A DNA stretch of 64,000 nucleotides from Guillardia theta CCMP2712 (Eukaryota > Protista > Cryptophyta): contig NW_005434638.1 in assembly GCF_000315625.1 (NCBI RefSeq), forward strand, positions 334,440 to 398,439, in the 5' to 3' direction. Shown piece after piece: positions 56,212-63,911 of the stretch (the first letter of the stretch is position 1; every line of letters begins with the position of its first letter). A model generated the notes under the pieces. It was not told where the DNA came from. It saw nothing but the letters and a program-made list of their open reading frames with translations, and searched no databases. Position numbers and translations under genes: made by a program.

Positions 56212-58872
56212 TTACTTCTTGAAGTGGTTAGCAAGGCGCCTGTTCTGCTTGTCACGCTTCTTTTCAAATCATCATTGAACTCACTTGCAAGCCTCGACAA
56301 CGTTCTCGCGCTGTCCGAAGGCGCTGATGCGGACGAACCCCTGAAGTAGCCGGTCAGCCACTGTCTCAGTACAATGCCATCAGGTCTACCTGACCGGCGG
56401 GCCCGAAGCCAAAGCCCGGAGTTGTGACAACCTGAAGGACGTCAGCATCTCGTGGCGCTAAGACTGATTGGGACCTGGCACTTGGTGAGAATCTCCTCGA
56501 AAGCATCCCACGAGTCTCTTCCGGGGAAGTGCGCGAAGATGTAAGGAGCGTTGTCGCCTCCATAGTACTTGATGCCGCAGGAGTCGAGGGTCTGCCGACA
56601 GTCAGCACTACACCAAGCGTGTGCACTCGCTTAGCTATACTGCCTCCTCCCCTGACCCCTCCCTTCCTCCCGTTTCCACATCCCCTTCCAGTTCGTCCTC
56701 CCTGTCTACCTCGCGGACGAGCTTGGCGTTCTCCAGGTAGTACTTGACGATGTCCATGACCTGGTTGATGTTGTCGAGGGCCGCGATGCCTCCTTGCTGC
56801 GGGATGCGAGTGAGGCAACGGAAGCTGATCAGTCGACCGACCTGAGCGACACTGCTGGCGCCGTTGAACAAGGTGCTCATGATGCGACCAAGGTCGTTCT
56901 GAGATGAGATGAGACACGCGTTGGATCAGGCTCGGCATTACCTTGACTGGTGTGCCATCCGCAAACTTCAACTCCGCTGGGCAAACTGAAACCGACGGGT
57001 GAGTTGGCAGACAGTAGGGACTGCAGGTCACCGATCCATCCCAGACGAACGCCAGTGAAACCCGCAAGCTTGGAGAAGGAAGTGGTCTCAATCGCAACCT
57101 CCTTCGCTCCCTGTCCACAACACGAAAACTCAGAACAGCCTGCTCACTGCCGTCTCTGCTATCTCACTTCGATCTCGTAGATCGACTTGGGGCACGCAGG
57201 GTCGGTGATGAAGGAGGAGTAGGCGGAATCGAAGATGATAACCTGAACGCCATGCGTCATGAGCGTCACAGCCCTCACCTCACACGTTAGCACCTTTCCG
57301 TGCTCCTTGGCGAAGTTGACCAGGCTCTCAAGCTGGGGCTTGGTCGCGCAAGCGCCAGTGGGGTTGTTGGGGTTGCCTTGCAGCTCTTATGAGTGGAAGG
57401 ACAGGAGGGAGCAGGGGACTACAGAAGTAGATGATGTCGCTGTCCTTGGCGAGCGAGATGTCGGGGAAGAACCCGTTGTCTGGTGTGCACTAGCCTCGTG
57501 TCAACAGGCTCGAAGAGGCGGGCCCAGGTTCAGTCTCACCGGCATGTAGGTGAGACCCGCGTACTGCTTCGTCTCAGGGTTGTTGAGTCCAGAGCGTCCC
57601 ATGATGACGCTCGAGTCAACGTAGACGGGGTAGGCAGGATCCTGCACGGCGACAGTCGCCTTGGTGCCTAAGAGAGCAAGTGAGCCTGCATGCTGGAGTG
57701 AGAAGATAGATGGGGTTCGTACCGAAGAGAAGCTGGAGGCGGCCGATGTCGCACTTGCTGCCATCGCTGACGAAGACTTCGTCCGGCTTGATCTGATCAC
57801 TTGCATTAGAGACCCCGTAAGGTCAAGGGGGACAGCAACCATTCCGTTGTACAAGACACTCGCGATCTTCTCCTTCAAAGTGCTCTCGCACTTGGGATCA
57901 TAACCCTCATAGCCCTACACAGAGTCTCAGGAACGGATTCCAGGTTTCATGGTCATTCGCAGCCAAAATAGGAGTAAGGAGGAGGATGAGGGGGAGGGGG
58001 GGGGGGTGATGCTGGTAAGCGAACCTCCTGGGAACCCAAGCCCTTGGAATAGGAAGCCATGGCCTGCAAGAGAGCCTCAGAGCTTGTCAAGGCGCAAGTT
58101 TGCATCATGCTCACATCAGAGACAGCGGCAGGAAGAGGATGAGTGGTATCGCCTACGAGGTATGAGTCATTCAGTTGATAAGGCGACCCCCCGGGGAGCA
58201 ACGCAGCTCTACCGATGCCGAGGGAGATCAAGGAAGCGTTGGGGTTGGCAGCCAAATAATCCTGCGGAGACGTCAGGTGAGGGAGGGAGAGGGACTAGCG
58301 ACCTTCTTCTTCTGGTTGATGACTGGGAAAAGATAACCAGCGGTGAGCCTGCCAACTCACGTCACCCCCCCCGCCTCAGCTTTCTTCATCCTCGTGACCC
58401 TCAGCCACCTCATCCGCCTCTGCCTCACACCCTACAAACAAGCAGACGAGCGCTCACAGCAGCTCGATCATGTCTGATACGCTTCCTCGTACCCCTCCCT
58501 AGCACCATATCGGATCACGAAGTACTTGGGCGGCTGTGCTAATGAACATCCTTCTGCACTCTCGAGAATCGAATTTGTTTGCTCGCTTCTCATACAATTT
58601 TGATCAACTGATGTACTAGAATTTTCGACCTTCACACTATCAGCAGTTTCATGGTTCCACGTTTCTCCCCTCATTTGAAACCAGCATACCTTTCTCCGTC
58701 TCTTGGCTGAAACTCTCTCCTCATTCCATCTTGTAGCCTCTTCTCTCAACTGCTCTCTGCTCCTCTCTGCTAATGGAGGTGACCTGTCCCTCTCCTCCTC
58801 CTTCTCCTCCTCCTCCTCCTCCTCCTTCACTCACTTTGCGAAGTTTTCATTGCGAGGCGTCTTGAGCGGCAT
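56212..58872 (-). CDS. dapL: LL-diaminopimelate aminotransferase (multi-exon)
   Basis: Spliced [13 protein letters not shown] / [71 protein letters not shown]-lysine [45 protein letters not shown] and RISAFG. First intron 58349-58834. Confidence 0.95.
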
Positions 58873-59738
58873 TGCGGGATCTGACACTCGCGAAGGAGGG
58901 GTGGGGCTAAGGAATGGAGGGGTGCGGTACACGGTTGTAAACAAACAGGTAGGTAGGGTAGTACTATTTGCTTATGATTCATGACCCGGTCCTGAAGAAT
59001 AACCCGGTGTTCTACAACAAGAACAGTCTGAAGAGGGGTGGGGTAGCTTGTATCATCTTCGAACGGGTGGTAATCATTCTTTCCACGGGTTCAAGTGATT
59101 GGGGGTAGGTGGGGGTAGTGAAAAGACCCAGGACTAGGGGTGGTGTGTTCACCTAAACAACCTTGCAGGGCCTCACAGCACCTACCCCATCTCCTACTAC
59201 CCTACCCACTATGTCACACTACCCCACCCCTTTTCGATAAGCCCATTGCCTTGTGCAGAGAGAAGAATTCAGGGAGCGAAGTACCCCCACCCCCTCGAGA
59301 ACATGACCATCCAATAAAACCACCCCATCCCTTAGCATCACTACCCCTACATGTGAGTGATAATTGCCAGGTGGGGGTAAGATTTTTTTTCTTTGCACGC
59401 GACATTTCGGCTACTTGCTCGAAATTTGAAATGTTAACATAAATTTATATTCTAGAATCTTGAATATTGAATTTTTGTCAGATAAATTTAATTGGACTAT
59501 CCAAACTTACCTTCTTGCCACCCCACCCCCCTGTGATACTGACTACCCCACCCTCATACACGGGATGCACAACCAGTAAAATCAATCAAGGCATAGACTA
59601 AACCAAATCCAGGAACAAGGACCCCTTCTTTTATGACCCCTACCCCCTTTTCTTCCTGTATTCTCCTCATGGCATCTTGGGAGAAGAACGGAAACTAAGT
59701 ACCCCTACCCCCCTCACTCTCACAAGACACTCGCCACC
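58873..59738. promoter_or_regulatory. Putative bidirectional promoter of dapL/dapF with repeated TACCCC motif and central AT-rich patch
   Basis: Head-to-head ATGs are separated by 866 bp. About a dozen TACCCC/GGGGTA copies by hand count; AT-rich stretch at about 59420-59500. Confidence 0.6.
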
Positions 59739-61744: not shown

Positions 61745-61819
61745 GGAGGAAGGGGAAGAGCGGAAGGGGGGCTAGTTTCCTCAAGCTTTATCAGCACCGA
61801 CAATTTGAGTCAAGTGAAT

Positions 61820-63911
61820 CTACTTGGCAATGACGCCCGCGGGCAGATCAACCTGAAACATGATGCGCTTCAACCCTCCCCTCCTCTTCCTCCTCCTCCT
61901 CCCTCCTCCTCCTCTCCCCCCCTCCCCCTCCTCGTCTCGTCCTATCACCTCGTTCTTCCAGATGTCCTCGACCACCTGGCGCTTGCGGATGACATGCACC
62001 TTGTTGTCGACGATCATGACCTGGCGAGATGGTCAGGAGAAGAGACGAGACCAGTCGTCGACCTCAGGAGCCTCAGGGAACGAGTTGTAATTCTTGGTGC
62101 TCATGCTCGAGCAGTAGGCGCCCGAAGCCTTGCAGCGTGTCAAGGAAGGAGGAGGAGGAGGAGGAGCGGGTGGTTTTACCTCGATGACAACGACGTCACC
62201 CGGCACGGCCTCACAGAGCATGCGCTCCGACAAGGTTTCGGGTTCACCTGCGAGCAGAAGGAGTGACAAGAAGCCAAATGAGGAAGAGAAACAGAAAAAG
62301 GCAAAAGAAGGTGGCAAGAGGGGGAGGGGGGGGGGGGGGGGGAGGGGGGAGGACGAGGACGAGGACGAGGTTGGGGGGGGAGGGTTTGGATTAGGGAAGG
62401 AGGAGAGACCAGGGGCAGGCGTCATGAGGTCTCCAGACTCGCAGCAGTGACCGCAAACGACGTAGGACTTCCTCTTGGAGGCCCTCGAAGCATCGCGAGG
62501 GACAACAACGATGGGATGCTACCGCAGCATGTCAGTCTCCTGCTCGCCTCCTCTCCTATGCTCTCCCTCCATCTTTGGCTGAACCATCCCTCACCTGTGC
62601 TCCATACAAGCTCGGGCGGAGCACGTCTGTCATGCCGGCATCGAGCTTGATGAAGGTGTGCCCCTCGTCGGTGCCGGTCTGGACGATGTCGTGGACAGAG
62701 GCGACGAGGCAGGCGCTGTTAGCCGACAGGAAGGTGCCAGGCTCGATCTCGAGGTGCAGCTTACGGCCAAACTTGCTGCTGAACTGCTCGAACTCGTCCT
62801 TTACCACCGCGCAGTCCGTCTGCAAGTTGGTTCCTTTGTCTGTGCGCATGCGCGCCACCTTGTAGCCTCCGCCAAGGTTGAGGACGGTCACCTCGGGGAA
62901 CTTCTCGCACAGGGCGATGGACATGCCGGTGCATCTCCTCCACACCGCTGGGTCTGAGCCCGACCCGATGTGCGTGTGCACGCGAACGACTTTGCAGCCG
63001 GCAGCCTTCACCATCTCGCTGCACTTGTCCGCGTACTCGTGCCAGATGCCGAAGGAGGAAGACGGTCCTCCCACGTTCGTCTTGCTCGTTCCTCCTGAGC
63101 CGACCCCAGGGTTGAAGCGAAGCCCGAGCTCTTTCCCTGCTCCAGCACTCAAACTCGTTCCCCTGCTCCCCAGCGCTCCTGACCTGGGCACTTGGCGCAG
63201 AACTTCTCGACCTGGAGGAGGGAGCAGCAGTTGATCTTGACGCCCTGCTCCACCAGCTTCTCGAACCCTTCGCCCAGTTCCTGCCAGCTGTCAGAGGCAC
63301 GCAAGCTTCATGCTCAAGGCACTTGGGAGGAGAGCGAGCAGTGGGCTGGAGGAACTCCCGCCGCCATGGCACGCTGGACCTGCACACAGCCAGGCATGAG
63401 GAGGGAGGGGAGTTGATCTCCTCAGACCTCAAAGATGGAGGAGCAGTCGAAGTGAAGCCCCATGGAGTGGAAGAGCTTCAGGATGGCAGCGTTGGGTGCG
63501 GCCTGGGAGAGGATGAGAGAGGCAGGGGAACAGAGTCGAATGACCTTCATAGCGTATCGCACAGTCAAGCCGTAGGCGTTGGGAAAGGCGAGGGCTGCCT
63601 CCGCCTGTTCCTCTCATTACTCGATTCCTCGCAACCCTGAGGCTCCACCTGCTTCTTGAGGGTCGCCAGGTCGTAGGCATAGCAGGGAGTGCCGATGGTG
63701 TCTGCGATCTCAAACGCCACCTAGAGGAGCATGTGAGAGAGAGCGAAACAAACGCGAGAAGAAACAGAGAGGAGAGGAGGGAGGAGTCAACATGCCGTTG
63801 AGGAGGAGAGGAGGAGAGGAGGAGAGGGGAGGATCAGCCTCCGAGGGGTTCAAGGACTCCCACCTCAGGAGTCAAGAAATTTGAGCGTGTTCGATATCTG
63901 GACGTGGACAT
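61820..63911 (-). CDS. lysA: Diaminopimelate decarboxylase (multi-exon; extreme 5' end could extend beyond the window)
   Basis: [11 protein letters not shown]-lysine RYAMK/A, FDCSS, GLRFNPG...[67 protein letters not shown] and IRKRQ. RPSLYG, CESGD and the neighbourhood favour DAP over ornithine decarboxylase. Confidence 0.93.

Follow-up and report, generated by a model that had tools for sequence, protein, structure and literature searches.

Why should three genes for consecutive steps of lysine synthesis lie side by side in the nuclear genome of an alga? The question arises from a 64,000-nucleotide stretch of Guillardia theta CCMP2712 (the window; contig C36:334440-398439 of a genome of 87.1 Mb in 669 contigs), in which three intron-rich genes, dapL (minus strand), dapF (plus) and lysA (minus), fill the 7.7 kb from position 56212 to 63911. 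Neither open reading frames (ORFs) nor NCBIfam profile matches place another gene between them. Their products would catalyse the three closing reactions of the diaminopimelate (DAP) pathway in its DapL variant: tetrahydrodipicolinate to LL-DAP by DapL, LL-DAP to meso-DAP by DapF, and meso-DAP to lysine by LysA. We conclude that this is very probably a genuine three-gene nuclear cluster for the end of the pathway, which recurs in cryptophytes despite rearrangement; the meaning of the linkage and a cytosolic site for the enzymes are more tentative.

Gene models were built by linking conserved peptide anchors via in-frame GT-AG introns, mostly 41-60 nt long in the three genes, and about 45% of the locus is exonic (Table 1). 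Their start and stop codons agree exactly with the coordinates, and with the distances of 866 bp and 75 bp between the genes, given in the preliminary description of this DNA, and its identification of three spliced adjacent genes as dapL, dapF and lysA is borne out by NCBIfam matches, by matches to solved structures and by motifs. The dapL model and the deposited protein P0397 (GUITHDRAFT_152780) differ in a single residue, where exons 9 and 10 join (one acceptor site). In single-exon matches the best NCBIfam model for dapL exons is TIGR03542 (1e-11 to 2e-15), TIGR03540 and other models match much less well, and the nearest solved structure for exon 8 is Arabidopsis DapL 2Z1Z. The 406-residue model has the pyridoxal phosphate (PLP)-lysine motif SFSK..GFTGxRLGW as well as NNPTG and SDGSKCD. 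Protein searches used as query a contiguous 305-residue dapL exon of the metagenome contig L100, 75% identical to the Guillardia protein; full-length proteins named LL-DAP aminotransferase share 57-79% identity with it, and those of green algae and plants 57-60%. DapL, of which one plant-type copy was found in the genome, is of the plant/algal type and is predicted from its sequence to produce LL-DAP from tetrahydrodipicolinate.

Four exons of dapF match TIGR00652, and the best structure matches of exon 11 are solved DapF structures. Both catalytic cysteines, one per half of the protein, are found in the 288-residue model (GACGNATRC and LACGTGAC). Segment L100:7810-7995 spans model residues 49-110 contiguously, which confirms three junctions and the 8-codon mini-exon AGLLRCFK at 60452-60475; the last acceptor, 61592 or 61607, is uncertain. 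DapF matches occur only once in the whole genome. The search for its origin used a single 44-residue exon, which shares 93% identity with a Hanusia phi sequence and is too conserved to separate plant-type from proteobacterial-type relatives. Introns 7 and 9 of dapF contain long (CT)n and (CTCCT)n microsatellites (window 60770-60815 and 61085-61190).

Over residues 12-423 the lysA model can be aligned gap-free to the intronless relatives L015-L019, with 65-80% identity (77-80% for L015-L018). Its best structure match is the diatom enzyme 7JPJ (206 bits), versus 97 bits for E. coli 1KNW and 48 bits for Arabidopsis 6N2A, and NCBIfam returns NF006515 (114 bits), TIGR01048 (99 bits) and nspC (44 bits). 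The PLP lysine and the motifs YAMKA, HTHIGSG, EPGT, CESGD and GAY are all there. Conversion of meso-DAP to lysine has been demonstrated biochemically for the PtLYSA-type enzyme, the replacement of EPGR by EPGT was reported in diatoms and explicitly in Guillardia theta, and this lysA type was ascribed to a transfer from PVC (Planctomycetes, Verrucomicrobia, Chlamydiae) bacteria to algae (bioRxiv 10.1101/2020.10.01.322594). A decarboxylase acting on ornithine or arginine, which the preliminary description had considered as a way in which its reading could fail, does not fit these data: the nearest structure is 7JPJ, and the ornithine-decarboxylase-like paralogues, with motifs PFYAVKCN and GPTCDS, are three separate intronless genes on other contigs. 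A divergent lysA-like gene on contig C190 reaches 67 bits to solved DAP decarboxylases and is not a close paralogue of the cluster gene; beside it the genome has one lysA copy of PtLYSA type. By these comparisons the cluster enzyme is predicted to be a true diaminopimelate decarboxylase of that type.

The limits of lysA deserve a comment. Its true 3' end is uncertain because the ORF ends in a glycine/arginine-rich tail of about 40 residues after residue 423 (window 61820-61945, minus strand) that is missing in all relatives; possibly a last intron was overlooked or the mature mRNA has an earlier stop. At the other end, a run of N of about 2.3 kb starts just past base 64000 (64001 to about 66310; L003:2001-4310), 89 bases upstream of the lysA ATG, and may be a scaffold gap; an upstream lysA exon inside this run is formally conceivable. 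An aspartate kinase-LysA fusion, prompted by the top match to NF006515, was rejected: an in-frame TGA precedes the ATG at 63911 and the cryptophyte orthologues begin there too. The intron density of lysA differs strikingly among relatives, the gene being intronless in L017:573-1835 and L018:2004-3290, split by 10 introns in Guillardia and spread over about 10 kb in Baffinella. The closest non-cryptophyte LysA (64% identity) is part of an intronless 803-residue ORF on a TARA Oceans contig (L005:1083-3494, plus strand), which combines TrmO_N (tRNA methyltransferase O) with LysA and is adjoined by an ADP-ribosyltransferase-like ORF.

Does the arrangement extend beyond one genome? The preliminary description had proposed a comparison of synteny among the orthologues, and this finds the trio clustered in two relatives and the dapL/dapF pair in a further lineage. 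In Baffinella frigidus, which belongs to a different taxonomic order than Guillardia (NCBI taxonomy), scaffold MU647433.1 (L104) carries dapF (minus, 1033-8341), dapL (plus, 8990-19405), a gene X (minus) that encodes a 270-residue coiled-coil protein, and lysA (plus, from 23372). L106, a widespread 67.8 kb metagenome contig from an uncultured relative, has the mirror image, lysA (minus), X (plus), dapL (minus) and dapF (plus), in 7.5 kb, and its X is 77% identical to that of Baffinella. The metagenome contigs L100 and L101 have dapL (minus) and dapF (plus) head to head with a spacer of 432 bp; in Baffinella L104 and L106 the divergent spacer measures about 650 bp and about 400 bp, compared with 866 bp in Guillardia. 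The Guillardia orthologue of X is spliced and lies at window 52260-53347 (minus); a proteasome alpha-subunit gene lies in the 2.9 kb that separate it from dapL, and X of L100 is found about 6 kb past dapF. X is a charged coiled-coil gene with the motifs RREMLAA.RE.NIR and QRREENI and has no evident link to lysine. The region has been repeatedly rearranged, with X inverted, lysA on opposite sides and differing flanks (arginine-kinase-like, NudC/dyskerin, proteasome), and the trio stays within 8-25 kb despite this. What stays constant is the divergent dapL/dapF pair, to which lysA is joined in two of the three lineages seen, on one flank in Guillardia and on the other in Baffinella. Outside cryptophytes, DAP-pathway neighbours of lysA were found neither in Porphyridium purpureum nor in a TARA picoeukaryote contig nor in the three eukaryote-like contigs L005, L006 and L008. 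A second copy of dapL exon 1 (MPLKVPRNENF...) is present in Baffinella within the dapF region on the opposite strand (L104:6069-6167, minus) and could be either a short duplicated segment or an artefact of assembly close to gaps.

In a simple model with about 25,000 genes (an estimated number), three named single-copy genes would fall in three consecutive slots with a chance of about 1e-8. This estimate, together with the recurrence of the trio or pair in relatives, upholds the earlier argument that chance adjacency is very unlikely and that the genes hence form a cluster. Of the marks of a eukaryotic gene cluster, the locus shows three non-homologous genes (of three folds) for consecutive steps, adjacency beyond chance and recurrence, and our confidence that it is real, non-random and conserved is high.

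The cluster comprises the three terminal steps only. Whole-genome family searches find the remaining pathway genes on other contigs (dapA-like on C34 and C11, dapB on C93, asd on C17), and aspartate kinase (lysC) homologues on C205 and at C36:220.6 kb, the latter 170 kb from the cluster. The suggestion that dapA, dapB, lysC or asd might continue it past base 64000 therefore does not hold. That the gene order follows the order of the pathway is true in Guillardia; as a general rule it fails, the order in Baffinella being dapF, dapL, X, lysA, and the match is probably incidental because it is not conserved there.

Table 1. Features of the lysine gene cluster and of related genes and fusions. Coordinates without a contig name are positions in the window.
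Feature	Coordinates	Strand	Description
dapL	56212..58872	-	LL-diaminopimelate aminotransferase, plant/TIGR03542 type; 19 exons, 406 codons modelled (405 in deposited protein); ATG at 58872, stop codon ends 56212
dapL exons 1-7	58872-58835, 58348-58303, 58261-58213, 58152-58115, 58063-58025, 57914-57840, 57792-57723	-	
dapL exons 8-13	57667-57540, 57489-57420, 57376-57294, 57242-57168, 57110-57032, 56985-56942	-	
dapL exons 14-19	56898-56842, 56796-56710, 56591-56475, 56431-56390, 56340-56285, 56239-56212	-	
dapL-dapF spacer	58873..59738		866 bp head-to-head between start codons; presumed bidirectional promoter
dapF	59739..61744	+	diaminopimelate epimerase; 12 exons, 288 codons; ATG at 59739, stop codon ends 61744
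dapF exons 1-6	59739-59813, 59946-60005, 60049-60109, 60241-60350, 60452-60475, 60519-60578	+	
dapF exons 7-12	60631-60669, 60880-60923, 60996-61056, 61210-61272, 61404-61535, 61607 (or 61592)-61744	+	
dapF-lysA spacer	61745..61819		75 bp tail-to-tail between stop codons
lysA	61820..63911	-	diaminopimelate decarboxylase, PtLYSA/E. coli type with EPGT motif; 11 exons, 464 codons modelled; ATG at 63911, stop at 61820-61822
lysA exons 1-6	63911-63864, 63720-63649, 63604-63545, 63502-63428, 63379-63323, 63280-63184	-	
lysA exons 7-11	63136-62595, 62518-62410, 62247-62180, 62128-62063, 62020-61820	-	
Ornithine-decarboxylase-like paralogues	C191:56070-57239, C106:96043-96807, C43:264531-265718		ORFs of 523-542 residues with long acidic N-terminal extensions
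Divergent lysA-like PLP decarboxylase	C190:66776-67877 (= L009:3949-4974)	+	TEYGRS replaces EPGR/T
LysA-DapF fusions	L020:54-2234, P0004, P0182, P0252, P0268	+ (L020)	726 residues (L020)

Where in the cell would these enzymes work? In Guillardia, DapL, DapF and LysA start directly with the catalytic domain, preceded by neither signal nor transit peptide, and so do the transcript-derived DapL (405-406 residues) and LysA (423-428 residues) of cryptophytes; LysA proteins of Porphyridium and other algae have N-terminal extensions. Since plastid import in cryptophytes requires a signal peptide plus a transit peptide, the lack of presequences suggests that the three enzymes are cytosolic. Two genes outside the cluster, dapB (G000:C93:~12076, minus strand; MPVKVAINGAGGRMG...) and one dapA-like gene (G000:C11:~481460, minus strand; MAKFELAGSYVALITPF...), also appear to begin at the catalytic domain, with upstream exons possible. 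The whole DAP pathway of Guillardia may lack plastid presequences.

The cluster would have come together in an ancestor that these cryptophytes share, when genes already in the nucleus were rearranged, rather than through transfer of an operon. We picture dapL and dapF as transcribed together in opposite directions from their common 0.4-0.9 kb spacer, which would act as a bidirectional promoter and balance their expression, and the linkage as retained because it would aid balanced expression of consecutive steps. Given the 75-bp tail-to-tail spacer, the 3' ends of the dapF and lysA transcripts of Guillardia probably overlap. Contigs from runs guessed to be RNA, in several studies, contain 25-38% of the words of the locus; with exons at about 45% of it, this hints at expressed exons and is silent on correlation among the genes.

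Could the linkage instead be neutral, a grouping that arose once in a cryptophyte ancestor through chance or drift and persisted for lack of time and rearrangements, with no function and no shared regulation? Several observations lean that way and weigh against a cluster held together by its function. The unrelated gene X persists near the pair in all four genomes (Guillardia, at 52.3-53.3 kb, Baffinella, L106 and L100), so that part of the conservation may be ordinary microsynteny. Linkage of lysA is dispensable: the gene is gone from the neighbourhood in the L100 lineage, being absent within 9 kb downstream of the dapL/dapF pair, and in L017 and L018, whose lysA is 77-80% identical, dapF is absent in the 2.1 kb downstream of it and a tubulin-tyrosine-ligase gene lies upstream. 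The spacers of Guillardia and L100 have no motif of at least 10 bases in common. The dapF-lysA junction in Guillardia depends on a single assembly, and in Guillardia itself co-regulation of the genes, their transcript ends and a lack of further 5' exons are presumed. A neutral origin has nevertheless to start from a coincidence of about 1e-8, small even when many possible pathway triplets are allowed for, and to keep the trio within 8-25 kb through several rearrangements of the region; independent LysA-DapF and DapB-DapL fusions moreover reveal repeated physical coupling of these very steps. We consider it unlikely.

Adjacency could also be a relic, if the trio had been gained together from a bacterial operon fragment or from the genome of the red-algal endosymbiont. 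Some bacterial contigs with this lysA type do have dapF directly downstream (L050) or carry an aminotransferase (L070, L072), and the proposed transfer of this lysA type from PVC bacteria into algae and the top NCBIfam match to NF006515 point in the same direction. However, the complete trio is missing from every one of about 70 bacterial loci with this lysA type, and the aminotransferases beside bacterial lysA are only 25-28% identical to Guillardia DapL, which is of the plant/algal type. The lysA type itself is common to red and green algae, prasinophytes and ochrophytes, and lysA of the red alga Porphyridium has no DAP-pathway neighbours. Alternating strands and 10-18 spliceosomal introns per gene are not those of a colinear intronless operon. 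Joint acquisition of the trio thus appears very improbable; a transferred operon is unlikely, and the most economical explanation is that rearrangements inside the nuclear genome of cryptophytes built the cluster. A misjoin, or genes of a contaminant, is hardly credible: the N run after base 64000 is close to the lysA start codon, but 56212-63911 contains not a single N, the three genes resemble the surrounding eukaryotic genes in G+C content and in their short GT-AG introns, and the same pairings recur in independent assemblies of relatives.

We thus retain a genuine cluster assembled within the nuclear genome, and hold more tentatively the view that selection for co-regulation maintains it; that view is rated below the cluster itself, somewhat short of even odds, because X also stays nearby and part of the conservation may be microsynteny. 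Equally tentative is the fuller picture, in which the end of lysine synthesis moved from the plastid to the cytosol and a cluster assembled de novo around a bidirectional dapL/dapF promoter is held by selection. This would make it one of the rare gene clusters for amino-acid biosynthesis in protists that were assembled de novo and are maintained by selection, a parallel to the LysA-DapF and DapB-DapL fusions, which arose independently elsewhere. Small, clean and conserved in at least two cryptophyte orders with differing internal order, the cluster offers a tractable natural experiment on why eukaryotic pathway genes stay linked, with a shared bidirectional promoter, a shared chromatin domain and the avoidance of toxic or wasted intermediates as candidate causes. 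It also bears on the site of lysine synthesis in algae with complex plastids. Animals lack the DAP pathway, which gives it practical interest as a target for algicides and herbicides.

To our knowledge primary anabolic gene clusters are uncommon in eukaryotes and very few are known in algae. Full-text literature searches, of incomplete coverage, yielded no account of DAP-pathway genes clustered in cryptophytes or in any other alga, and the only relevant paper on Guillardia theta and diaminopimelate found there, the PtLYSA preprint, deals with the EPGT substitution only. This agrees, provisionally, with the preliminary description, whose author knew of no algal lysine cluster; the cluster is apparently undescribed, in a class of arrangements that is well known in eukaryotes.

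Among characterised enzymes, PtLYSA of Phaeodactylum tricornutum (7JPJ) is the closest solved relative of Guillardia LysA, a proven diaminopimelate decarboxylase that also has threonine for arginine in EPGR; unlike the Guillardia protein it carries a bipartite plastid presequence as well as a loop insertion of 9 residues, and diatom DAP genes have not been reported as clustered. The bacterial lysA-dapF operons (e.g. metagenome contig L050) share the adjacency and the lysA type, but are intronless, with both genes on the same strand and no dapL, whereas lysA and dapF of Guillardia are convergent, spliced and monocistronic. A cytosolic relocation of a plastid-type DAP pathway was proposed for Perkinsus, Oxyrrhis and Hematodinium, whose plastid-type DapL-pathway enzymes likewise have no targeting peptides and are predicted to be cytosolic; these are non-photosynthetic or deep-branching dinoflagellate relatives, in which no gene clustering was reported (PMC4802802).

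Neighbouring DAP-pathway steps are likewise linked in the DapB-DapL fusion protein of oomycetes, which joins steps 4 and 5, is of bacterial type and occurs in organisms without dapF, whereas the Guillardia genes are separate (Morris et al. 2009, PMC2705460). The fusions of an N-terminal LysA to a C-terminal DapF are single ORFs of 665-726 residues on metagenome and transcriptome contigs of eukaryotes, for which a literature search found no published description; P0004 has a signal-peptide-like N-terminus and L020 does not. They couple physically the same two consecutive steps and have the same lysA type (about 60% identity), but as one polypeptide with a DapF part 38% identical to that of Guillardia, where the two genes lie on opposite strands.

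Gene clusters of primary metabolism are known from other eukaryotes: green algae have one for nitrate assimilation, and yeasts have the GAL and DAL clusters. The cryptophyte cluster resembles them in its adjacent non-homologous nuclear genes for consecutive steps of one pathway, each presumably with its own promoter, some divergent, and in its conservation with rearrangement. It differs in being an anabolic housekeeping cluster of three genes, without a transporter or regulator gene, and in belonging to a cryptophyte.

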